DNA from: Utricularia gibba
Lineage: Eukaryota > Plantae > Magnoliophyta
DNA: 17,181 nt
Assembly (NCBI GenBank): GCA_002189035.1
Contig: NEEC01000512.1
Coordinates: forward strand, 1 to 17,181
Direction: 5' to 3'
The notes under the pieces are model-generated. The model saw only the letters and a program-made list of their open reading frames with translations. It did not search any database and was not told the origin of the DNA. This document shows, one piece after another, positions 1 to 17,181 of the stretch. Each line of letters opens with the position of its first letter. The first letter of the stretch is position 1. A program made the translations under genes and the position numbers.

Positions 1-834
1 CCGAAAGTAAGTTGTAGCCCGGCAAAGAAAGTGATGTATTTATTAACGTTCGGTTTTCAGGGTTGCCTACATGGTTTTCCAAGGAAAAGCTTTTCGTTTT
101 GTGGCGGCCGCTCTCGCTGGGCACTTGGTCCGGGCCCCTGATTTCTTTATGGCTCATGAGGACAAAAGATGCAAATCGATGAAAATAATGATGCATTTGT
201 TTAAATTACGATGTCGCGTGCACCCAAATGATTTTTTTAACAACATACTTTATACATGAGGAGGCGGTCTTGGGGGGCACTTGGAACCGGAAAAAGATCA
301 GCTTAGGCTTGGGCCGAAAGTAAGTTGTAGCCCGGCAAAGAAAGTGATGTATTTATTATCGTTCGGTTTTTGGGGTTGCCTACATGGTTTTTCAAGGAAC
401 ATCTTCTCGTTTTGTGGTGGCTAGTTTCGCTGGGAACTTGGTCCTTGACCCCGATTCTGTATGGCTCATGGGGTCAACCGGATGCAAATCGAAGAAAAAA
501 AAATGATGCATTTGTTTAAATTACGATATCACGTGCACCCTACATGATTTTTTTCGACAACTTACTTTATACATGGGGAGGCGGTCTTGGGGGTACCTGG
601 AACCGGAAAATGGTCAGCTTAGGCTTGGGCCGATAGTAAGTTGTAGCCCGGCAAAGAAAGTATGTATTTATTATCGTTCGGTTTTCGGGGCTGCCTAAAT
701 GCTTTTTGAAAGAACATCTTCTCGTTTTATGGCGGCCAGTCTCGCTGGGAACTTGGTCCTTGACCCTGGTTCTGTATGGCTCATGGGGTGATGAAAAAAA
801 ATGATGCATTTGTTTAAATTACGGTATCACGTGC
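1..834. repeat. ~315-bp satellite array, segment 1 (about 2.7 monomers)
   Basis: The landmark ATGATGCATTTGTTTAAATT occurs at 188, 503 and 801. Spacings are 315 and 298; the last monomer carries a 16-bp deletion. Confidence 0.97.
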
Positions 835-1568
835 CCTGGTTATATTCATATTGTGCATTTTGGTGAGGAGAGCAGATTCACCATAAGTTTTCTCAACTTC
901 ATTACATCTCTTAGTTCCAATCTCTTTTCTGTAGATTGCAACTCAATCATGATCTCTCTAAATGTTGGCTCTGGTGTAACAGGATATTCAGGATACAGCT
1001 GATGGAGCTTTCCTTCAATAATGTCAAGGATTTTTCTTTCTGTCTCAAGTGCACATAACTTTGGCTCGAATCTTGCAGGTAGGCTCATGATTGCCTTGCT
1101 AATCACCTTTTGATCCTCAAGTTTTTCCCCCAATCCTCGAATCTCCTTCACAAGCTTCGCAGTACGTTCATAATAGACTTGTATGGTTTCATTGTCTAAC
1201 ATTTTGTTCCTCTCAAAGTCCTCCAGCTTGTTTTTGCATAATATCTCTCTGAGTTTGGCATCGCCTTCATAATGGGATTTGAGAGTATCCCATATTTCTT
1301 TTGCTGATTGACACTCTGCAATATCATCAAATAGATGTTCAGAGATGGCTTGATACAAGGCATCCATTGCTTCATCTTTTCTCTGTTGAAGATACTCAGC
1401 TTCCTCTTGCTGTTCTGATGTGGATTTGCTTGTTATTGTAATAGCCGGAATCTCCCTTTCAACAACATCCCAAATCTTTCTGACCCGAAGGTAGCTGCGC
1501 ATCTTTTTGACCCAGCTTCCATACTCTGAACCATCAAATATTGGAGGTCCTCTACCAGATGCCATCAT
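814..1568 (-). pseudogene. gag: gag copy 1 with an apparent 1-bp frameshift near 905 (possibly a consensus error)
   Basis: Reads CATTACATCT where the other three copies read CATTACCATCT. This gives the alternative 846-1568 frame; the translation is otherwise identical to copy 2. Confidence 0.8.
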
Positions 1569-1674
1569 AGCCACCGCTTGACAAGCTTTGGGTTGATACT
1601 TGGTAATCTACCAAGTAAAAAACGCTGAACGGTATATAAAATACTGAAACGAACACAGGTTTGAGAACCTTACT

Positions 1675-2011: not shown

Positions 2012-5000
2012 CTTGGTCCGGCCCCCTGATTCTTTATGGCTCATGAGGACAAAAGGATGCAAATCGATGAATACAATGATGCAATTGTTTAAATTACGAT
2101 ATCACGTGCACCCTACATGATTTTTTCAACAACTTACTTTATACTTGAGGAGGTGGTCTTGGGGGGCAAGAGGAACCGGACAAAGGTCAGCTTATGCTTG
2201 GGTCGAAAGTAAGTTGTAGCCTGACAAAGAAAGTGATCTATTTATTAACGTTCGGTTTTCGGGGCTACCTACATGGTTTTTCAAGGAACCGCTTCTCGTT
2301 TTGTGGCGGCCAGTCTCGCTGGGAACTTGGTCCTTTACCCGATTCTGTATGGCTCATGAGGTCAACCGAATGCAAATCGATTAAAAAAATGATGCATTTG
2401 TTTAAATTGCGATATGACGTGCACCCCACATGATTTTTTTCAACAACTTACTTTATACTTGGGGAGGCGGTCTTGGGGTGCACCTGGAACGGGACAAAGG
2501 TCAGCTTAGGCTTGGCCGAAAGTAAGTTGTAGCCCGACAAATAAAGTGATAAATTTGATATCGTTCGGTTTTCGGGGGCTACCTACATGGTTTTTCAAGG
2601 AACCGCTTCTCGTTTTGTGGCGGCCAGTCTCGCTGGGAACTTGGTCTTTGACCCCGATTCTGTATGGCTCATGAGGTCAACCGGATGCAAATCGATTAAA
2701 AAAAATGATGCATTTGTTTAAATTGCGGTATGACGTGCACCCCACATGATTTTTTTCAACAACTTACTTTATACTTGAGGAGGCGGTCTTGGGGTGCACC
2801 TGGAACGGGACAAAGGTCAGCTTAGGCTTGGCAGAAAGTAAGTTGTAGCCCGGCAAAGAAAGTGATGTATTTATTATCGTTCGTTTTTTGGGGGCTGCCT
2901 ACATGGTTTTTCAAGGAACTTCTCGTTTTGTGGCGGCAGTCTCGCTGGGAACTTGGTCCTGGACCCCGATTCTGTATGGCTCATGGGGTCAACCGGATGC
3001 AAATCGATGAAAAAATGATGCATTTGTTTAAATTACGATATCACGTGCACCCTACATGATTTTTTCAACAACTTACTTTATACATGGGGAGGCGGTCTTG
3101 GGGGGTACCTGGAACGGAAAATGGTCAGCTTAGGCTTGGGCGATAGTAAGTTGTAGCCCGCAAAGAAAGTGATGTATTTATTATCGTTCGGTTTTTGGGG
3201 GCTGCCTACATGGTTTTTCAAGGAAATCTTCTCGTTTTGTGGTGGCAGTCTCGCTGGGAACTTGTCCTGACCCCGATTCTGTATGGCTCATGGGGTCAAC
3301 CGGATGCAAATCGAAGAAAAAAAATGATGCATTTGTTTAAATTACGATATCACGTGCACCCTACATGATTTTTTCGACAACTTACTTTATACATGGGGAG
3401 GCGGTCTTGGGGGTACCTGGAACGGAAAATGGTCAGCGTAGGCTTGGGCCGATAGTAAGTTGTAGCCCGACAAATAAAGTGATGTATTTATTATCGTTCG
3501 GTTTTCGGGCTGCCTACATGCTTTTTAAAGAACATCTTCTCGTTTTATGGCGGCCAGTCTCGCTGGGAACTTGGTCCTTGACCCGGTTCTGTATGGCTCA
3601 TGGGTCAACCGGATGCAAATCGATGAAAAAAATGATGCATTTGTTTAAATTGCGATATCACGTGCACCCCATGATTTTTTCAACAACTTACTTTATACTT
3701 GAGGAGGCGATCTTGGGTGCACCTCGAACAGGACAAAGGTAAGGTTTGGCTTGGCCGAAGTTAGTTGTAGCCCGACAAATAAAGTGATGTATTTATTATC
3801 GTTCGGTTTTCGGGGCTGCCTACATGGTTTTTCAAGGAACCGCTTCTCGTTTTGTGGTGGCCAGTCTCGCTGGGAACTTGGTCCTTGACCCCGATTCTGT
3901 ATGCTCATGAGGTCAACCGGATGCAAATCAATTAAAAAAAATGATGCATTTGTTTAAATTACGATGTCACGTGCACCCCACATGATTTTTTTAACAACAT
4001 ACTTTATACATGAGGAGGCAGTCTTTGTGCATTTGGAACGGGACAAAGGTAAGGTTTTGCGTGCACCGAAAGTAAGTTGTAGCCCGGCAAAGAAAGTGAT
4101 GTATTTATTAACGTTCGGTTTTCGGGTTGCCTACATGGTTTTTCCAAGGAAAAGCTTTTCGTTTTGTGGCGGCCGCTCTCGCTGGGACTTGGTCCGGGCC
4201 CCTGATTCTTTATGGCTCATGAGGACAAAATGCAAATCGATGAAAATAATGATGCATTTGTTTAAATTACGATATCGCGTGCACCCCAATGATTTTTTAA
4301 CAACATACTTTATACATGAGGAGGCGGTCTTGGGGGCACTTGGAACCGGAAAAAGATCAGCTTAGGCTTGGGCCGAAAGTAAGTTGTAGCCCGGCAAAGA
4401 AAGTGATGTATTTATTATCGTTCGGTTTTGGGTTGCCTACATGGTTTTTCAAGGAACATCTTCTCGTTTGTGGTGGCTTTTCGCTGGGAACTTGGTCCTT
4501 GACCCGATTCTGTATGGCTCATGGGGTCAACCGGATGCAAATCGAAGAAAAAAAATGATGCATTTGTTTAAATTACGATATCACGTGCACCCTACATGAT
4601 TTTTTCGACAACTTACTTTATACATGGGGAGGCGGTCTTGGGGGTACCTGGAACCGGAAAATGGTCAGCTTAGGCTTGGGCCGATAGTAAGTTGTAGCCC
4701 GGCAAAGAAAGGGATGTATTTATTATCGTTCGGTTTTGGGGGCTGCCTACATGGTTTTTCAAGGAAAATCTTCTCGTTTTGTGGTGGCTAGTCTCGCAGG
4801 GAACCTTGTCCGACCCCGATTCTGTATGGCTCATGGGGTCAACCGGATGCAAATCGAAGAAAAAAAATGATGCATTTGTTTAAATTACGATATCACGTGC
4901 ACCCTACATGATTTTTTCGACAACTTACTTTATACATGGGAGGCGGTCTTGGGGGTACCTGGAACTGGAAAATGGTCAGCGTAGGCTTGGGCCGATAGTA

Positions 5001-6447
5001 AGTTGTAGCCCGACAAATAAAGTAATGTATTTATTATCGTTCGGTTTTCGGAAGCTGCCTAAATGCTTTTTGAAAGAACATCTTCTCGTTTTATGGCGGC
5101 CAGTCTCGCTGGGAACTTGGTCCTTGACCCTGGTTCTGTATGGCTCATGGGGTCAACCGGATGCAAATCGATGAAAAAATGATGCATTTGTTTAAATTGC
5201 GATATCACGTGCACCCCACATGATTTTTTCAACAACTTACTTTATACTTGAGGAGGCGATCTTAGGGTGCACCTCGAACAGGACAAAGGTAAGGTTTGGC
5301 TTGCGCCGAGAGTTAGTTGTAGCCCGACAAATAAAGTGATGTATTTATTATCGTTCGGTTTTCGGGGGCTGCCTACATGGTTTTTCAAGGAACCGCTTCT
5401 CGTTTTGTGGTGGCCAGTCTCGCTGGGAACTTGGTCCTTGACCCCGATTCTGTATTGCTCATGAGGTCAACCGGATGCAAATCAATTAAAAAAAATGATG
5501 CATTTGTTTAAATTACGATGTCACGTGCACCCCACATGATTTTTTTAACAACATACTTTATACATGAGGAGGCAGTCTTTGAGTGCATTTGGAACGGGAC
5601 AAAGGTAAGGTTTTGCGTGCACCGAAAGTAAGTTGTAGCCCGGCAAAGAAAGTGATGTATTTATTAACGTTCGGTTTTCAGGGTTGCCTACATGGTTTTC
5701 CAAGGAAAAGCTTTTCGTTTTGTGGCGGCCGCTCTCGCTGGGCACTTGGTCCGGGCCCCTGATTCTTTATGGCTCATGAGGACAAAATGATGCAAATCGA
5801 TGAAAATAATGATGCATTTGTTTAAATTACGATGTCGCGTGCACCCCAAATGATTTTTTTAACAACATACTTTATACATGAGGAGGCGGTCTTGGGGGCA
5901 CTTGGAACCGGAAAAAGATCAGCTTAGGCTTGGGCCGAAAGTAAGTTGTAGCCCGGCAAAGAAAGTGATGTATTTATTATCGTTCGGTTTTTGGGGTTGC
6001 CTACATGGTTTTTCAAGGAACATCTTCTCGTTTTGTGGTGGCTAGTTTCGCTGGGAACTTGGTCCTTGACCCCGATTCTGTATGGCTCATGGGGTCAACC
6101 GGATGCAAATCGAAGAAAAAAATGATGCATTTGTTTAAATTACGATATCACGTGCACCCTACATGATTTTTTCGACAACTTACTTTATACATGGGGAGCG
6201 GTCTTGGGGGGTACCTGGAACCGGAAAATGGTCAGCTTAGGCTTGGGCCGATAGTAAGTTGTAGCCCGGCAAAGAAAGTGATGTATTTATTATCGTTCGG
6301 TTTACGGGGCCTAAATGCTTTTTGAAAGAACATCTTCTCGTTTATGGCGCCAGTCTCGCTGGGAACTTGGTCCTTGACCCTGGTTCTGTATGGCTCATGG
6401 GGTGATGAAAAAAATGATGCATTTGTTTAAATTACGGTATCACGTGC
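2012..6447. repeat. ~315-bp satellite array, segment 2 (partial monomer plus 14 monomers)
   Basis: Landmark at 2076, 2389, 2705, 3015, 3324, 3632, 3941, 4249, 4555, 4867, 5179, 5495, 5809, 6122 and 6414. Spacings are 306-316, with the last at 292. Confidence 0.97.
3049..6155. repeat. Two copies of a pure-satellite 5-monomer HOR (~1.55 kb)
   Basis: Five distinguishable variants (I, B, C, D, E) start at 3049/3358/3666/3975/4283 and again at 4589/4901/5213/5529/5843. Markers include GGTCAGCGTAGG (B), GCGATCTT (C), GCGGCCGCTCTCG (D) and AAAAAGATCAGC (E). Confidence 0.8.
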
Positions 6448-7182
6448 CCTGGTTATATTCATATTGTGCATTTTGGTGAGGAGAGCAGATTCACCATAAG
6501 TTTTCTCAACTTCATTACCATCTCTTAGTTCCAATCTCTTTTCTGTAGATTGCAACTCAATCATGATCTCTCTAAATGTTGGCTCTGGTGTAACAGGATA
6601 TTCAGGATACAGCTGATGGAGCTTTCCTTCAATAATGTCAAGGATTTTTCTTTCTGTCTCAAGTGCACATAACTTTGGCTCGAATCTTGCAGGTAGGCTC
6701 ATGATTGCCTTGCTAATCACCTTTTGATCCTCAAGTTTTTCCCCCAATCCTCGAATCTCCTTCACAAGCTTCGCAGTACGTTCATAATAGACTTGTATGG
6801 TTTCATTGTCTAACATTTTGTTCCTCTCAAAGTCCTCCAGCTTGTTTTTGCATAATATCTCTCTGAGTTTGGCATCGCCTTCATAATGGGATTTGAGAGT
6901 ATCCCATATTTCTTTTGCTGATTGACACTCTGCAATATCATCAAATAGATGTTCAGAGATGGCTTGATACAAGGCATCCATTGCTTCATCTTTTCTCTGT
7001 TGAAGATACTCAGCTTCCTCTTGCTGTTCTGATGTGGATTTGCTTGTTATTGTAATAGCCGGAATCTCCCTTTCAACAACATCCCAAATCTTTCTGACCC
7101 GAAGGTAGCTGCGCATCTTTTTGACCCAGCTTCCATACTCTGAACCATCAAATATTGGAGGTCCTCTACCAGATGCCATCAT
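6427..7182 (-). CDS. gag: C-terminally truncated copia Gag, 251 aa from the first ATG; last 6 residues and stop come from satellite DNA
   Basis: PPIFDGSEYGSWVKKMRSYL..KIWDVVE matches the copia Gag N-terminus (DUF4219-like). SAKEIWDTLKSHYEG..FE..KM..NETI..YY.R...LV.EIRGLGE.LED.KVI.K.IMSLP.RF matches the Retrotran_gag_2/UBN2-like region. No CCHC zinc knuckle is present. The track's start at 7188 is a GTG; the first ATG is at 7182. Confidence 0.85.
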   Translation of the reverse strand: MMASGRGPPIFDGSEYGSWVKKMRSYLRVRKIWDVVEREIPAITITSKSTSEQQEEAEYLQQRKDEAMDALYQAISEHLFDDIAECQSAKEIWDTLKSHYEGDAKLREILCKNKLEDFERNKMLDNETIQVYYERTAKLVKEIRGLGEKLEDQKVISKAIMSLPARFEPKLCALETERKILDIIEGKLHQLYPEYPVTPEPTFREIMIELQSTEKRLELRDGNEVEKTYGESALLTKMHNMNITRARDTVI

Positions 7183-7288
7183 AGCCACCGCTTGACAAGC
7201 TTTGGGTTGATACTTGGTAATCTACCAAGTAAAAAACGCTGAACGGTATATAAAATACTGAAACGAACACAGGTTTGAGAACCTTACT

Positions 7289-7300
7289 GCTCTGATACCA
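7289..7300 (-). other. tRNA-iMet PBS, copy 2
   Basis: TGGTATCAGAGC on the minus strand, adjacent to the LTR. Confidence 0.93.
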
Positions 7301-7626
7301 TGTTGTTGCAAGAAAAATAGAGTCTTGGGAAGTAACAAAAAGGTAATGCTTATGAGATCACCTTGGATGAAAAACGACTCATGAACAATAAGAATGACCG
7401 AAAACCTAATTGACATGCATTTCTAGTAGGGCTTATATATACCAAATACCTAGGTTACCCAACAGTGGGCCACAATCATTGAAAACACACAAAAAGCCCA
7501 ACAACTCGAATCCAACACTTCCATGCTCGAACCCAACACCTTTTTTTTATCTGAAATATGACATTATGACACAAGTTTAGTTCTTCCAATCACCTTCAAG
7601 CTTTGGATTGAGGCTGATCTCCAACA
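7301..7626 (-). repeat. LTR, 326 bp, copy 2
   Basis: As copy 1. Confidence 0.9.
7432..7441 (-). promoter_or_regulatory. Putative LTR TATA box, copy 2
   Basis: TATATATAAG on the minus strand, same position in the LTR. Confidence 0.65.
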
Positions 7627-9590
7627 CTTGGTCCGAGCCCCTGATTCTTTATGGCTCATGAGGACAAAAGGATGCAAATCGATGAATACAATGATGCAAT
7701 TGTTTAAATTACGATATCACGTGCACCCTACATGATTTTTTCAACAACTTACTTTATACTTGAGGAGGTGGTCTTGGGGGCAAGAGGAACCGGACAAAGG
7801 TCAGCTTATGCTTGGGTCGAAAGTAAGTTGTAGCCTGACAAAGAAAGTGATCTATTTATTAACGTTCGGTTTTCGGGGCTACCTACATGGTTTTTCAAGG
7901 AACCGCTTCTCGTTTTGTGGCGGCCAGTCTCGCTGGGAACTTGGTCCTTTACCCCGATTCTGTATGGCTCATGGGGTCAACCGGATGCAAATCGAAGAAA
8001 AAAAATGATGCATTTGTTAAATTACGATATCACGTGCACCCTACATGATTTTTTCGACACTTACTTTATACATGGGGAGGCGGTCTTGGGGGTACCTGGA
8101 ACTGGAAAATGGTCAGCGTAGGCTTGGGCCGATAGTAAGTTGTAGCCCGACAAATAAAGTAATGTATTTATTATCGTTCGGTTTTCGGAAGCTGCCTAAA
8201 TGCTTTTTGAAGAACATCTTCTCGTTTTATGGCGGCCAGTCTCGCTGGGAACTTGGTCCTTGACCCTGGTTCTGTATGGCTCATGGGGTCAACCGGATGC
8301 AAATCGATGAAAAAAAATGATGCATTTGTTTAAATTGCGATATCACGTGCACCCCACATGATTTTTTCAACAACTTACTTTATACTTGAGGAGGCGATCT
8401 TAGGGTGCACCTGAACAGGACAAAGGTAAGGTTTGGCTTGCGCCGAGAGTTAGTTGTAGCCCGACAAATAAAGTGATGTATTTATTATCGTTCGGTTTTC
8501 GGGGGCTGCCTACATGGTTTTTCAAGGAACCGCTTCTCGTTTTGTGGTGGCCAGTCTCGCTGGGAACTTGGTCCTTGACCCCGATTCTGTATTGCTCATG
8601 AGGTCAACCGGATGCAAATCATTAAAAAAAATGATGCATTTGTTTAAATTACGATGTCACGTGCACCCACATGATTTTTTTAACAACATACTTTATACAT
8701 GAGGAGGCAGTCTTTGAGTGCATTTGGAACGGGACAAAGGTAAGGTTTTGCGTGCACCGAAAGTAAGTTGTAGCCCGGCAAAGAAAGTGATGTATTTATT
8801 AACGTTCGGTTTTCAGGGTTGCCTACATGGTTTTCCAAGGAAAAGCTTTTCGTTTTGTGGCGGCCGCTCTCGCTGGGCACTTGGTCCGGGCCCCTGATTC
8901 TTTATGGCTCATGAGGACAAAATGATGCAAATCGATGAAAATAATGATGCATTTGTTTAAATTACGATGTCGCGTGCACCCCAAATGATTTTTTTAACAA
9001 CATACTTTATACATGAGGAGGCGGTCTTGGGGGGCACTTGGAACCGGAAAAAGATCAGCTTAGGCTTGGGCCGAAAGTAAGTTGTAGCCCGGCAAAGAAA
9101 GTGATGTATTTATTATCGTTCGGTTTTTGGGGTTGCCTACATGGTTTTTCAAGGAACATCTTCTCGTTTTGTGGTGGCTAGTTTCGCTGGGAACTTGGTC
9201 CTTGACCCCGATTCTGTATGGCTCATGGGGTCAACCGGATGCAAATCGAAGAAAAAAAATGATGCATTTGTTTAAATTACGATATCACGTGCACCCTACA
9301 ATGATTTTTCGACAACTTACTTTATACATGGGGAGCGGTCTTGGGGGGTACCTGGAACCGGAAAATGGTCAGCTTAGGCTTGGGCCGATAGTAAGTTGTA
9401 GCCCGGCAAAGAAAGTGATGTATTTATTATCGTTCGGTTTACGGGGGCTTCCTAAATGCTTTTTGAAAGAACATCTTCTCGTTTATGGCGGCCAGTCTCG
9501 CTGGGAACTTGGTCCTTGACCCTGGTTCTGTATGGCTCATGGGGTGATGAAAAAAAATGATGCATTTGTTTAAATTACGGTATCACGTGC
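7627..9590. repeat. ~315-bp satellite array, segment 3 (partial monomer plus 6 monomers)
   Basis: Landmark at 7691, 8005, 8317, 8631, 8944, 9259 and 9557. Confidence 0.97.
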
Positions 9591-10323
9591 CCTGGTTATA
9601 TTCATATTGTGCATTTTGGTGAGGAGAGCAGATTCACCATAAGTTTTCTCAACTTCATTACCATCTCTTAGTTCCAATCTCTTTTCTGTAGATTGCAACT
9701 CAATCATGATCTCTCTAAATGTTGGCTCTGGTGTAACAGGATATTCAGGATACAGCTGATGGAGCTTTCCTTCAATAATGTCAAGGATTTTTCTTTCTGT
9801 CTCAAGTGCACATAACTTTGGCTCGAATCTTGCAGGTAGGCTCATGATTGCCTTGCTAATCACCTTTTGATCCTCAAGTTTTTCCCCCAATCCTCGAATC
9901 TCCTTCACAAGCTTCGCAGTACGTTCATAATAGACTTGTATGGTTTCATTGTCTAACATTTTGTTCCTCTCAAAGTCCTCCAGCTTGTTTTTGCATAATA
10001 TCTCTCTGAGTTTGGCATCGCCTTCATAATGGGATTTGAGAGTATCCCATATTTCTTTTGCTGATTGACACTCTGCAATATCATCAAATAGATGTTCAGA
10101 GATGGCTTGATACAAGGCATCCATTGCTTCATCTTTTCTCTGTTGAAGATACTCAGCTTCCTTGCTGTTCTGATGTGGATTTGCTTGTTATTGTAATAGC
10201 CGGAATCTCCCTTTCAACAACATCCCAAATCTTTCTGACCCGAAGGTAGCTGCGCATCTTTTTGACCCAGCTTCCATACTCTGAACCATCAAATATTGGA
10301 GGTCCTCTACCAGATGCCATCAT
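9570..10323 (-). pseudogene. gag: gag copy 3 with an apparent 2-bp frameshift near 10160 (possibly a consensus error)
   Basis: Reads AGCTTCCTTGC where the other copies read AGCTTCCTCTTGC. The downstream 184 aa are identical to copy 2. Confidence 0.8.
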
Positions 10324-10429
10324 AGCCACCGCTTGACAAGCTTTGGGTTGATACTTGGTAATCTACCAAGTAAAAAACGCTGAACGGTATATAAAATACT
10401 GAAACGAACACAGGTTTGAGAACCTTACT

Positions 10430-10441
10430 GCTCTGATACCA
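10430..10441 (-). other. tRNA-iMet PBS, copy 3
   Basis: TGGTATCAGAGC on the minus strand, adjacent to the LTR. Confidence 0.93.
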
Positions 10442-10764
10442 TGTTGTTGCAAGAAAAATAGAGTCTTGGGAAGTAACAAAAAGGTAATGCTTATGAGATC
10501 ACCTTGGATGAAAAACGACTCATGAACAATAAGAATGACCGAAAACCTAATTGACACATTTCTAGTAGGGCTTATATATACCAAATACCTAGGTTACCCA
10601 ACAGTGGGCCACAATCATTGAAAAACACAAAAAAGCCCAACAACTCGAATCCAACACTTCCATGCTCGAACCCAACACCTTTTTTTATCTGAAATATGAC
10701 ATTATGACACAAGTTTAGTTCTTCCAATCACCTTCAAGCTTTGGATTGAGGCTGATCTCCAACA
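10442..10764 (-). repeat. LTR, 323 bp, copy 3
   Basis: As copy 1. Confidence 0.9.
10571..10580 (-). promoter_or_regulatory. Putative LTR TATA box, copy 3
   Basis: TATATATAAG on the minus strand, same position in the LTR. Confidence 0.65.
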
Positions 10765-12731
10765 CTTGGTCCGAGCCCCTGATTCTTTATGGCTCATGAG
10801 GACAAAAGGATGCAAATCGATGAATACAATGATGCAATTGTTTAAATTACGATATCACGTGCACCCTACATGATTTTTTCAACAACTTACTTTATACTTG
10901 AGGAGGTGGTCTTGGGGGGCAAGAGGAACCGGACAAAGGTCAGCTTATGCTTGGGTCGAAAGTAAGTTGTAGCCTGACAAAAAGTGATCTATTTATTAAC
11001 GTTCGGTTTTCGGGGCTACCTACATGGTTTTTCAAGGAACCGCTTCTCGTTTTGTGGCGGCCAGTCTCGCTGGGAACTTGGTCCTTTACCCCGATTCTGT
11101 ATGGCTCATGGGGTCAACCGGATGCAAATCGAAGAAAAAAAATGATGCATTTGTTTAAATTACGATATCACGTGCACCCTACATGATTTTTCGACAACTT
11201 ACTTTATACATGGGGAGGCGGTCTTGGGGGGTACCTGGAACTGGAAAATGGTCAGCGTAGGCTTGGGCCGATAGTAAGTTGTAGCCCGACAAATAAAGTA
11301 ATGTATTTATTATCGTTCGGTTTTCGGAAGCTGCCTAAATGCTTTTTGAAAGAACATCTTCTCGTTTTATGGCGGCCAGTCTCGCTGGGAACTTGGTCCT
11401 TGACCCTGGTTCTGTATGGCTCATGGGGTCAACCGGATGCAAATCGATGAAAAAAATGATGCATTTGTTTAAATTGCGATATCACGTGCACCCCACATGA
11501 TTTTTTCAACAACTTACTTTATACTTGAGGAGGCGATCTTAGGGTGCACCTCGAACAGGACAAAGGTAAGGTTTGGCTTGCGCCGAGAGTTAGTTGTAGC
11601 CCGACAAATAAAGTGATGTATTTATTATCGTTCGGTTTTCGGGGGCTGCCTACATGGTTTTTCAAGGAACCGCTTCTCGTTTTGTGGTGGCCAGTCTCGC
11701 TGGGAACTTGGTCCTTGACCCCGATTCTGTATTGCTCATGAGGTCAACCGGATGCAAATCAATTAAAAAAAATGATGCATTTGTTTAAATTACGATGTCA
11801 CGTGCACCCCACATGATTTTTTTAACAACATACTTTATACATGAGGAGGCAGTCTTTGAGTGCATTTGGAACGGGACAAAGGTAAGGTTTTGCGTGCACC
11901 GAAAGTAAGTTGTAGCCCGGCAAAGAAAGTGATGTATTTATTAACGTTCGGTTTTCAGGGTTGCCTACATGGTTTTCCAAGGAAAAGCTTTTCGTTTTGT
12001 GGCGGCCGCTCTCGCTGGGCACTTGGTCCGGGCCCCTGATTCTTTATGGCTCATGAGGACAAAATGATGCAAATCGATGAAAATAATGATGCATTTGTTT
12101 AAATTACGATGTCGCGTGCACCCCAAATGATTTTTTTAACAACATACTTTATACATGAGGAGGCGGTCTTGGGGGGCACTTGGAACCGGAAAAAGATCAG
12201 CTTAGGCTTGGGCCGAAAGTAAGTTGTAGCCCGGCAAAGAAAGTGATGTATTTATTATCGTTCGGTTTTTGGGGTTGCCTACATGGTTTTTCAAGGAACA
12301 TCTTCTCGTTTTGTGGGGCTAGTTTCGCTGGGAACTTGGTCCTTGACCCCGATTCTGTATGGCTCATGGGGTCAACCGGATGCAAATCGAAGAAAAAAAT
12401 GATGCATTTGTTTAAATTACGATATCACGTGCACCCTACATGATTTTTTCGACAACTTACTTTATACATGGGGAGGCGGTCTTGGGGGGTACTGGAACCG
12501 GAAAATGGTCAGCTTAGGCTTGGGCCGATAGTAAGTTGTAGCCCGGCAAAGAAAGTGATGTATTTATTATCGTTCGGTTTACGGGGGCTTCCTAAATGCT
12601 TTTTGAAAGAACATCTTCTCGTTCTATGGCGGCCAGTCTCGCTGGGAACTTGGTCCTTGACCCTGGTTCTGTATGGCTCATGGGGTGATGAAAAAAAATG
12701 ATGCATTTGTTTAAATTACGGTATCACGTGC
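10765..12731. repeat. ~315-bp satellite array, segment 4 (partial monomer plus 6 monomers), near-identical to segment 3
   Basis: Landmark at 10829, 11142, 11456, 11772, 12086, 12399 and 12698. The monomer variants occur in the same order as in 7627-9590. Confidence 0.97.
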
Positions 12732-13463
12732 CCTGGTTATATTCATATTGTGCATTTTGGTGAGGAGAGCAGATTCACCATAAGTTTTCTCAACTTCATT
12801 ACCATCTCTTAGTTCCAATCTCTTTTCTGTAGATTGCAACTCAATCATGATCTCTCTAAATGTTGGCTCTGGTGTAACAGGATATTCAGGATACAGCTGA
12901 TGGAGCTTTCCTTCAATAATGTCAAGGATTTTTCTTTCTGTCTCAAGTGCACATAACTTTGGCTCGAATCTTGCAGGTAGGCTCATGATTGCCTTGCTAA
13001 TCACCTTTTGATCCTCAAGTTTTTCCCCCAATCCTCGAATCTCCTTCACAAGCTTCGCAGTACGTTCATAATAGACTTGTATGGTTTCATTGTCTAACAT
13101 TTTGTTCCTCTCAAAGTCCTCCAGCTTTTTTTGCATAATATCTCTCTGAGTTTGGCATCGCCTTCATAATGGGATTTGAGAGTATCCCATATTTCTTTTG
13201 CTGATTGACACTCTGCAATATCATCAAATAGATGTTCAGAGATGGCTTGATACAAGGCATCCATTGCTTCATCTTTTCTCTGTTGAAGATACTCAGCTTC
13301 CTCTTGCTGTTCTGATGTGGATTTGCTTGTTATTGTAATAGCCGGAATCTCCCTTTCAACAACATCCCAAATCTTTCTGACCCGAAGGTAGCTGCGCATC
13401 TTTTTGACCCAGCTTCCATACTCTGAACCATCAAATTGGAGGTCCTCTACCAGATGCCATCAT
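12711..13463 (-). pseudogene. gag: gag copy 4 with apparent 1-bp (~13128) and 2-bp (~13435) deletions (possibly consensus errors)
   Basis: CAGCTTTTTTTGC versus CAGCTTGTTTTTGC, and CAAATTGG versus CAAATATTGG. The 101-aa and 141-aa ORF pieces match copy 2. Confidence 0.8.
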
Positions 13464-13569
13464 AGCCACCGCTTGACAAGCTTTGGGTTGATACTTGGTA
13501 ATCTACCAAGTAAAAAACGCTGAACGGTATATAAAATACTGAAACGAACACAGGTTTGAGAACCTTACT

Positions 13570-13581
13570 GCTCTGATACCA
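13570..13581 (-). other. tRNA-iMet PBS, copy 4
   Basis: TGGTATCAGAGC on the minus strand, adjacent to the LTR. Confidence 0.93.
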
Positions 13582-13902
13582 TGTTGTTGCAAGAAAAATA
13601 GAGTCTTGGGAAGTAACAAAAAGGTAATGCTTATGAGATCACCTTGGATGAAAAACGACTCATGAACAATAAGAATGACCGAAAACCTAATTGACATGCA
13701 TTTCTAGTAGGGCTTATATATACCAACCTAGGTTACCCAACAGTGGGCCACAATCATTGAAAACACACAAAAGCCCAACAACTCGAATCCAACACTTCCA
13801 TGCTCGAACCCAACACCTTTTTTTATCTGAAATATGACATTATGACACAAGTTTAGTTCTTCCAATCACCTTCAAGCTTTGGATTGAGGCTGATCTCCAA
13901 CA
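13582..13902 (-). repeat. LTR, 321 bp, copy 4
   Basis: As copy 1. Confidence 0.9.
13713..13722 (-). promoter_or_regulatory. Putative LTR TATA box, copy 4
   Basis: TATATATAAG on the minus strand, same position in the LTR. Confidence 0.65.
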
Positions 13903-16900
13903 CTTGGTCCGCCCCCTGATTCTTTATGGCTCATGAGGACAAAAGGATGCAAATCGATGAATACAATGATGCAATTGTTTAAATTACGATATCACGTGCA
14001 CCCTACATGATTTTTTCAACAACTTACTTTATACTTGAGGAGGTGGTCTTGGGGGGCAAGAGGAACCGGACAAAGGTCAGCTTATGCTTGGGTCGAAAGT
14101 AAGTTGTAGCCTGACAAAGAAAGTGATCTATTTATTAACGTTCGGTTTTCGGGGCTACCTACATGGTTTTTCAAGGAACCGCTTCTCGTTTTGTGGCGGC
14201 CAGTCTCGCTGGGAACTTGGTCCTTTACCCCGATTCTGTATGGCTCATGAGGTCAACCGAATGCAAATCGATTAAAAAAAATGATGCATTTGTTTAAATT
14301 GCGATATGACGTGCACCCCACATGATTTTTTTCAACAACTTTCTTTATACTTGGGGAGGCGGTCTTGGGGTGCACCTGGAACGGGACAAAGGTCAGCTTA
14401 GGCTTGGGCAGAAAGTAAGTTGTAGCCCGGCAAATAAAGTGATAAATTTGATATCGTTCGGTTTTCGGGGGCTACCTACATGGTTTTTTACAGGAACCGC
14501 TTCTCGTTTTGTGGCGGCCAGTCTCGCTGGGAACTTGGTCTTTGACCCCGATTCTGTATGGCTCATGAGGTCAACCGGATGCAAATCGATTAAAAAAATG
14601 ATGCATTTGTTTAAATTGCGGTATGACGTGCACCCCACATGATTTTTTTCAACAACTTACTTTATACTTGAGGAGGCGGTCTTGGGGTGCACTGGAACGG
14701 GACAAAGGTCAGCTTAGGCTTGGGCAGAAAGTAAGTTGTAGCCCGGCAAAGAAAGTGATGTATTTATTATCGTTTGGTTTTCGGGGGCTGCCTACATGGT
14801 TTTTCAAGGAACCGCTTCTCGTTTTGTAGCGGCCAGTCTCGCTGGGAACTTGGTCCTTGACCCCGATTCTGTATGGCTCATGAGGTCAACCGGATGCAAA
14901 TCGATTAAAAAAATGATGCATTTGTTTAAATTGCGATATCACGTGCACCCCACATGATTTTTTTCAACAACTTACTTTATACTTGGGGAGGTGGTCTTGG
15001 GGTGCACCTGGAACGGGACAAAGGTAAGGTTTGGCTAGCGCCGAGAGTTAGTTGTAGCCCGACAAATAAAGTGATAAATTTGATATCGTTCGGTTTTCGG
15101 GGCTACCTACATGGTTTTTCAAGGAACCGCTTCTCGTTTTGTGGCGGCCAGTCTCGCTGGGAACTTGGTCCTTTACCCCGATTCTGTATGGCTCATGAGG
15201 TCAACCGAATGCAAATCGATTAAAAAAAATGATGCATTTGTTTAAATTGCGATATGACGTGCACCCCACATGATTTTTTTCAACAACTTACTTTATACTT
15301 GGGGAGGCGGTCTTGGGGTGCACCTGGAACGGGACAAAGGTAAGGTTTGGCTAGCGCCGAGAGTTAGTTGTAGCCCGACAAAGAAAGTGATAAATTTGAT
15401 ATCGTTCGGTTTTCAGGGGCTACCTACATGGTTTTTACAGGAACCGCTTCTCGTTTTGTGGCGGCCAGTCTCGCTGGGAACTTGGTCTTTGACCCCGATT
15501 CTGTATGGCTCATGAGGTCAACCGAATGCAAATCGATTAAAAAAAATGATGCATTTGTTTAAATTGCGATATGACGTGCACCCCACATGATTTTTTTCAA
15601 CAACTTACTTTATACTTGGGGAGGCGGTATTGGGGTGCACCTGGAACGGGACAAAGGTCAGCTTAGGCTTGGACAGAAAGTAAGTTGTAGCCCGGCAAAT
15701 AAAGTGATAAATTTGATATCGTTCGGTTTTCGGTGGCTGCCTACATGGTTTTTCATGGAATCGCTTCTCATTTTGTGGCGGCCAGTCTCGCTGGGAACTT
15801 GATCCGGGCCCCCGATTCTTTATAGCTCATGAGGACAAAAGGATGCAAATCGATGAATACAATGATGCATTTGTTTAAATTACGATATCACGTGCACCCA
15901 CATGATTTTTTCAACAACTTACTTTATACTTGAGGAGGTGGTCTTGGGGGGCAAGAGGAACCGGACAAAGGTCAGCTTATGGTGGGGCCGAAAGTAAGTT
16001 GTAGCCTGGCAAAGAAAGTGATCTATTTATTAACGTTCGGTTTTCCGGGTTGCCTACATGGTTTTTCAAGGAACCGCTTCTCGTTTTGTGGCGGCCAGTC
16101 TCGCTGGGAACTTGGTCCTTGACCCCGATTCTGTATGGCTCATGAGGTCAGCCGGATGGAAATCGATTAAAAGAAATGATGCATTTGTTTAAATTGCGAT
16201 ATCACGTGCACCCCACATGATTTTTTCAACAACTTACTTTATACTTGAAGAGGCGGTCTTTGGGTGCAAGAGGAACGGGACAAAAGTCAGCTTAGGCTTG
16301 GGCCGAAAGGAAGTTGTAGCCCGGCAAAGAAAGTGATGTATTTATTATCGTTTGGTTTTCGGGGCTGCCTACATGGTTTTTCAAGGAACCGCTTCTCGTT
16401 TTGTAGCGGCCAGTCTCGATGGGAACTTGGTCCTTGACCCGATTCTGTATGGCTCATGAGGTCAACCGGATGCAAGTCGATTAAAAAAAATGATGCATTT
16501 GTTTAAATTGCGATATCACGTGCACCCCACATGATTTTTTTCAAACAACTTACTTTATACTTGAGGAGGCGGTCTTGGGGTGCAGCTGGAACGGGACAAA
16601 GGTAAGGTTTGGCTTGCGCCGAGAGTTAGTTGTAGCCCGACAAAGAAAGTGATAAATTTGATATCGTTCGGTTTTCAGGGGCTACCTACATGGTTTTTCA
16701 AGGAACCGCTTCTCGTTTTGTGGCGGCCAGTCTCGCTGGAACTTGGTCCTTTACCCCGATTCTGTATGGCTCATGAGGTCAACCGAATGCAAATCGATTA
16801 AAAAAAATGATGCATTTGTTTAAATTGCGATATGACGTGCACCCCACATGATTTTTTTCAACAACTTACTTTATACTTGGGGAGGGGTATTGGGGTGCAC

Positions 16901-17181
16901 CTGGAACGGGACAAAGGTCAGCTTAGGCTTGGACAGAAAGTAAGTTGTAGCCCGGCAAATAAAGTGATAAATTTGATATCGTTCGGTTTTCGGTGGCTGC
17001 CTACATGGTTTTTCATGGAATCGCTTCTCATTTTGTGGCGGCCAGTCTCGCTGGGAACTTGATCCGGGCCCCCGATTCTTTATAGCTCATGAGGACAAAA
17101 GGATGCAAATCGATGAATACAATGATGCATTTGTTTAAATTACGATATCACGTGCACCCCACATGATTTTTTCAACAACTT
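13903..17181. repeat. ~315-bp satellite array, segment 5 (about 10.4 monomers, different variant set)
   Basis: Landmark at 13966, 14281, 14598, 14913, 15229, 15546, 15862, 16176, 16490, 16807 and 17122 (spacing 314-317). Most monomers carry GATAAATTTGATATCG and/or ATCGATTAAAA variants. Confidence 0.97.

Follow-up and report, generated by a model that had tools for sequence, protein, structure and literature searches.

A truncated Ty1/copia remnant carried in recent nested duplications of a 314-bp satellite array in Utricularia gibba

The stretch of Utricularia gibba DNA analyzed here (17,181 bp, contig NEEC01000512.1 of assembly GCA_002189035.1; hereafter the window) consists of a satellite array interrupted by four near-identical copies of a truncated Ty1/copia retrotransposon. 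Tandem Repeats Finder reports a repeat of ~314-315 bp over nearly the whole window, and an nhmmer search with a profile built from clean monomers gives 44 monomer matches that tile it, the sole gaps being four blocks of ~1.18 kb. These blocks, which we refer to as stubs, all lie on the minus strand, at 835-2011 (copy 1, 1177 bp), 6448-7626 (copy 2, 1179 bp), 9591-10764 (copy 3, 1174 bp) and 12732-13902 (copy 4, 1171 bp), with stub-to-stub spacings of 5613, 3143 and 3141 bp. Pairwise alignment of the stubs, whose lengths range over 1171-1179 bp, yields 0-1 substitutions and 2-11 gap columns.

Between monomers of different types, identity is only 85-91% (a difference of 9-15%), and an identity matrix allowed us to read their order along the array. 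From left to right, the window runs A, B, P, stub 1, R, Y1, Y2, B′, C, D, E, A, B″, continues with C, D, E, A, B, P, stub 2, R and again C, D, E, A, B, P, stub 3, R, and ends with C, D, E, A, B, P, stub 4, R, Y1, Y2, Z, Z, Y1′, R′. The satellite left of stub 1 (1-834, plus strand) comprises a partial monomer, A, B and the truncated monomer P (752-834), which spans monomer positions 1 to ~100; no monomer type could be assigned to P, as it is too short for comparison. This segment differs from 5622-6447 by 1 substitution. Two copies of a native five-monomer higher-order repeat (HOR), C-D-E-A-B, occupy 3261-6365 on the plus strand (3261-4803 and 4804-6365). The unit is ~1.55 kb long, and its copies show 0.98% substitutions overall and 0.24% over C-D-E-A; both lie to the left of a stub and are stub-free or partly stub-free. 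Stub-free satellite also follows stub 4 (13903-17181, plus strand), where R, Y1 and Y2 give way to the irregular Z, Z, Y1′, R′ series, and the first 870 bp of this segment match the right flank of stub 1. Altogether, 14 monomers stand between stubs 1 and 2 and at least 10 follow stub 4 with no stub among them. The stub sits at the border of two array domains, with the C-D-E-A-B HOR on its left and a different, irregular pattern to the right of 13903.

Both ends of the stub are the same in every copy. The left junction, the 14-mer ACGGTATCACGTGC followed by CCTGG, occurs exactly four times in the window (821, 6434, 9577 and 12718), as does the right junction, CTCCAACA followed by CTTGGTCC (2004, 7619, 10757 and 13895); neither string was found in any of 200 shuffled sequences. 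Each block starts after ACGGTATCACGTGC and stops before CTTGGTCC. The original prediction for this DNA, which had described four fragments composed of a long terminal repeat (LTR), a primer binding site and gag, had asserted common junctions and named differing junctions as one outcome that would speak against it; all four junction pairs are identical. It had further pointed to marks private to the adjoining satellite, and these are indeed confined to the monomers next to the stubs. The variant GCAATTG is limited to the four monomers directly right of them, with GCATTTG in 38 monomers, and a 16-bp deletion (GGGGT/GATG) is limited to the four truncated monomers directly on their left. The deleted bases (785-800 in copy 1, and the equivalent positions elsewhere) coincide with a short direct repeat (GATG...GATG) in the monomer, which is compatible with slippage or microhomology-mediated loss.

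The anatomy of the stub is that of the front end of a Ty1/copia element. In copy 1, the minus strand reads, in order, LTR, primer site, leader and gag, the last running from an ATG at 1568/1565 to a break at 835. The 5′ LTR (2011 to 1687) is 325 bp long and has the termini TGTTG...CAACA; directly behind it lies the primer binding site TGGTATCAGAGC (1686 to 1675), which has four minus-strand matches, one per stub, each directly behind an LTR. We take TGGTATCAGAGC to be a primer site of the initiator tRNA-Met type, typical of Ty1/copia. The gag open reading frame (ORF) of copy 1 (846-1574, minus strand, 242 amino acids) matches the Pfam family Retrotran_gag_2 with an E-value of 2.8e-27 and 95.7 bits (cut-off 27), while a match to DUF4219 (5.9e-05, 23.1 bits) stays below its cut-off of 27. 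The stub therefore combines a TG...CA LTR with a short terminal inverted repeat, a primer site and a copia-type gag, and the predicted anatomy holds both in the sequence and in the Pfam match.

The remainder of an element is missing. No pol (integrase before reverse transcriptase), second LTR or 5-bp target-site duplication is present at the stubs, and the element stops inside gag. The 5-mers on the two sides, CGTGC and CTTGG, differ and hence do not form a target-site duplication. On the right, the stub ends with the true outer terminus of the 5′ LTR (TGTTG...), an integration boundary beside CTTGG; on the left, it breaks off inside gag. At this left junction the adjoining monomer stops at about position 100 of 315 and positions ~100-315 are missing, indicating that ~215 bp of satellite, and possibly whole monomers in addition, were lost with the rest of the element. 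The absence of pol, of a second LTR and of a target-site duplication identifies the stub as a truncated remnant rather than an element. It is a dead remnant that arose by one insertion followed by one deletion, as had been proposed.

The gag frame varies among the copies. In copy 1 it reaches a stop codon at 846-848, 11 bp short of the junction, whereas in copy 2 it is open across the junction, giving a 253-amino-acid ORF (6427-7188, minus strand) that ends seven codons into the satellite; the two copies differ here because of small indels close to the stub's 3′ end. Relative to copy 2, the frame shifts after about residue 54 in copy 3 and after about residue 10 in copy 4. As indel noise shifts the gag frame among the copies, reading-frame calls in this contig are unreliable and we place no weight on coding status. 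A word search for relatives of the gag fragment returned 459 candidates, none at E≤1e-10, under a length filter that excludes full polyproteins, and the four versions of the gag ORF were not present in an exact look-up against a collection of 15 billion proteins. Neither a 31-mer across the junction nor a degenerate satellite motif was found in metagenome contigs, and a satellite 18-mer was not found in viral contigs; the same 18-mer had 11 single matches in prokaryote genomes, about the number calculated for chance. The stub had no matches in a plasmid collection, and Rfam and tRNA scans of the window returned no matches. A possible 157-bp dimer structure of the monomer was also considered and is unsupported in the monomer compared, the half-versus-half score being 18 against 15.5 ± 2.1 for shuffles.

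Three of the four stubs belong to a tandem triplication at 4813-14249 (plus strand), composed of units of 3141-3144 bp at 4813-7953, 7954-11096 and 11097 to ~14240. Each 3.14-kb unit has the composition C, D, E, A, B, P, stub and R, so that six full monomers and a truncated one accompany each stub. In a self-comparison of the window, an offset of 3136-3141 bp extends from 4490 to 15895, and the near-perfect part is narrower and sharply bounded, by a last mismatch at 4812 on the left and by the first run of mismatches, from 14250, on the right, leaving 9.44 kb or 3.0 units. These bounds agree with the predicted extent of 4813-14226, and the spacings of 3143 and 3141 bp agree with the predicted period of 3141-3143 bp. 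The pairwise unit comparisons contain 0, 1 and 2 apparent substitutions, each of which is adjacent to an indel, and hence no confident substitution, so identity between units is far above the 85-91% identity between monomers, as expected of an HOR. The self-comparison and HOR decomposition that had been proposed as a check accordingly return 3.0 near-identical units with a native five-monomer HOR alongside.

The joints between the units retain a trace of the exchange that formed them. At the joint of units 1 and 2, alignment reveals a chimeric monomer (7940-8251, plus strand) that begins with 14 Y1-type bases (CTTGGTCCTTTACC), continues with 20 bases common to both types (7954-7973) and is C-type thereafter. 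The exchange point lies inside this 20-bp identical stretch. A second Y1/C monomer with the same joint, supported by both the identity matrix and alignment, is located between units 2 and 3 (11077-11391, plus strand). A chimera of this type would be left behind if Y1 had undergone in-register unequal exchange with the C monomer located seven positions to its left. At both outer ends, the triplication passes without interruption into the native context, B″ leading into C on the left and R into Y1 on the right. Furthermore, the R monomers behind stubs 2 and 3 both read CCGAGCCCC, where R1 reads CCGGCCCCC and R4 reads CCGCCCCC; the variant common to R2 and R3 weakly suggests a triplication in two steps.

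Two further features of the units may be recorded here. The combined length of P and stub is 1260, 1261, 1257 and 1254 bp in the four copies (752-2011, 6366-7626, 9508-10764 and 12649-13902), corresponding to 4.0 monomers; consequently, the satellite phase runs on across the stub, and the 3141-bp unit amounts to 10.0 monomers. In addition, the tandem arrangement generates the order LTR, primer site, gag, 2 kb of satellite and LTR, at 10765-13902 (minus strand) and 7627-10764. The sequence that immediately precedes the downstream LTR (AATCAGGGGGCCGGACCAAG) does not form a clean polypurine tract.

Stub 1 stands outside the triplication and is part of an older, larger duplicate. The block from 1 to ~2880 (plus strand), which holds satellite, stub 1, R, Y1 and most of Y2, matches 11899-14770 with 7 substitutions in 2880 bp (0.24%), and its left end lies beyond the window. 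Of the matching sequence, 520 bp (Y1 and most of Y2) fall outside the 3.14-kb unit, and the stub 1 block therefore represents an older and larger duplication, at a spacing of 5613 bp from stub 2. The order B, P, stub, R, Y1, Y2 is the original context of the stub, kept at stubs 1 and 4. Assuming a mutation rate of 7e-9 per site per generation, the zero differences over 3141 sites correspond to a divergence below ~0.1% and would place the 3.14-kb units, very roughly, under ~70,000 generations. By the same rough estimate, the older block, 0.15-0.24% diverged, would reach about two to three times this bound.

What the assembled sequence shows directly is that the four stubs have a single origin, how far the copies extend and how alike they are, and where recombination joined the units. 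Taken together, these observations make it very probable that one insertion and one truncation were followed by nested segmental duplications through ordinary satellite recombination. In the proposed course of events, a single Ty1/copia retrotransposon would have inserted in minus orientation where two monomers of the ~314-bp satellite meet, its LTR abutting CTTGG. One deletion would then have removed the element from within gag through the 3′ LTR, along with ~215 bp of adjacent satellite, perhaps with whole monomers too, leaving a dead 1.18-kb stub (LTR, primer site and the front of gag) without a target-site duplication. A larger block of satellite, stub, R, Y1 and Y2 would have duplicated first, producing the 5.6-kb spacing and ~0.2% divergence. 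In-register unequal exchange between the Y1 right of a stub and the C seven positions to its left would subsequently have created the 3141-bp duplication, and a further exchange between the new units the triplication. The identical junctions and flanks, the lack of any confident substitution and the recombinant joint bear out the prediction of a recent amplification, together with monomers, by the process that builds HORs. Stub-free HOR copies nearby are about as similar to each other (0.24-0.98%) as the copies of the older stub block are, and no special property of the stub is needed: it is a passenger of normal array turnover. The prediction that the stub has become part of the repeat unit, as a composite HOR, stands for the three exact tandem units and was overstated for the rest. 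The older copy at 5613 bp and the stub-free satellite on both sides describe a set of nested segmental duplications rather than a fixed new unit, and with 3.0 units, a fourth stub off the period and stub-free flanks, the window does not show the regular period of a long array.

We considered other explanations for these copies. Some retrotransposons target satellite motifs, and four independent insertions of the same copia family at a preferred site could in principle produce four similar blocks; the same break in gag together with the private flank marks rules this out for all practical purposes. All four copies have in common one gag break and the loss of ~215 bp of monomer, which already refutes such insertions, none of the four has a target-site duplication or a second LTR, and the flanking monomers are identical, private mutations included. 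Closer to the favored account is a route that accepts the same single origin but has the units made by replication, either from a 3.14-kb circle by rolling-circle copying and reintegration or by template switching or slippage at a fork. Circle closure or a template switch would be expected to leave a joint of the same appearance, leading from R to C across 20 identical bp, and both joints are identical. The ends of the triplication are nonetheless continuous with the native context, as in-place exchange predicts, and the variant present in R2 and R3 but missing from R4 suggests two steps instead of one burst. Neither point is decisive, but since both favor unequal exchange we regard a replication-based route as unlikely and consider that unequal crossing-over or gene conversion probably formed the units, with the older block probably arising before the triplication.

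An assembly expansion would be a different kind of explanation, in which the genome holds one or two stub-bearing units and the assembler laid out three in tandem. Because the units carry no confident substitution, read length alone anchors their number; their indel noise is that of an error-prone consensus, and the window is a short, satellite-only stretch. Against this, the indel errors differ from copy to copy, so that each was called separately, stub 1 has a different downstream context and real substitutions, which implies at least two genuine copies, the R2/R3 variant missing from R4 separates units 1-2 from unit 3, and a 9.4-kb triplication is within the reach of a single long read. We therefore judge an expansion of this type to be quite unlikely. 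Several considerations do weigh against the sequence of insertion, truncation and nested duplication that we favor. The tandem copy number is taken from the assembly. Units 1 and 2 differ by 24 indel events of 1-4 bp per 3.1 kb, 16 of the 24 in homopolymers, and such indels, which are frequent between otherwise identical copies (~0.8% of positions per pair, mostly in homopolymers; for example at 4879, 5174, 6116 and 7541), probably reflect a noisy, unpolished long-read consensus in which fine detail deserves less trust. The older duplicate has no sharp boundary on its right (~2880). Whether by unequal crossover, long-tract gene conversion, template switching or rolling-circle copying, the product would be the same. 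Lastly, the unit might be a selected, functional compound repeat, with its phase kept and its LTR able to act as a promoter for gag and satellite. Such a role would fit with P and R starting 1254-1261 bp apart (4.0 x 314), with the unit of 10.0 monomers and with the gag frame of copy 2, which is open into the satellite. The length relation is nevertheless a single after-the-fact coincidence with a chance of ~3-5%, and we found no mechanism for phase keeping; the spacing is unfixed (5613 versus 3141 bp) and the gag frame is unlike among copies, all of which makes selection very unlikely. A related and improbable suggestion is that the stub block may be the seed of a new compound satellite spreading through the 314-bp arrays, perhaps by means of the 10-monomer phase or of an LTR-driven gag-satellite RNA. 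If so, pseudo-elements of the form LTR-gag-satellite-LTR could in principle move satellite DNA, although the lack of a clean polypurine tract makes mobilization of this arrangement look unlikely.

The process has precedents in other genomes. In U. gibba itself, centromeres have been reported to be without satellites (PMC8333044). In Arabidopsis, five cases were described in which CEN180 gaps with ATHILA elements or solo LTRs are duplicated on the same chromosome, and these were credited to post-integration copying by an HOR-forming mechanism or to gene conversion (Naish et al. 2021 preprint, 10.1101/2021.05.30.446350). The likeness is that of an LTR element in a satellite that is later copied with flanking satellite on the same chromosome. 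The CEN180 elements are Ty3/gypsy, mostly intact or solo LTRs, and their copies are 8.9-538 kb apart; by contrast, the Utricularia window has a Ty1/copia LTR-gag stub in adjacent 3.14-kb units with a joint resolved to 20 bp. Compound satellite monomers are reviewed by Vondrak et al. (PMC8091179), and Sobo of Solanum bulbocastanum is among them; as cited there and in PMC9659126, Sobo forms a large homogeneous array with a fixed 4.7-kb monomer (Tek et al. 2005). Sobo resembles the present unit in joining a retrotransposon part to a tandem-repeat part, and here too the compound unit has a single origin, evident from its identical junctions and flanks. It differs in that the window contains three exact units plus one copy at another spacing, and the host satellite goes on without the stub. 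In maize, CRM1TR and CRM4TR are tandem repeats derived from LTR and untranslated regions, for which illegitimate deletion followed by gene conversion was proposed (Sharma et al. 2013, PMC3648361). There, as here, a retrotransposon LTR and the adjacent leader end up in tandem repeats, but the maize units are wholly element-derived, whereas ~63% of the unit described here is pre-existing satellite and the element is a passenger. Among animals, bovine satellite 1.711b consists of the 1.711a unit with an amplified inserted sequence, and the human telomere-to-telomere annotation includes "composite elements". Both resemble our case in that a foreign or mobile sequence inserted once and was then amplified with the satellite unit; they are, for their part, animal satellites in long-established arrays with fixed units.

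The stub-bearing units reveal no new mechanism or system. They are a new instance, and not a new kind, of a process known from other genomes, distinguished by a copia stub, adjacent units and a resolved joint. What they provide is a clean and very young example of block duplication in a satellite array, a snapshot resolved to the base pair. With the stub as a natural tag, one can read where the duplicated blocks begin and end, how they recombined (in register, within 20 identical bp) and in what order the events took place. Given reads or population data, such tagged, substitution-free units could serve to measure rates of satellite recombination and the lengths of its tracts.

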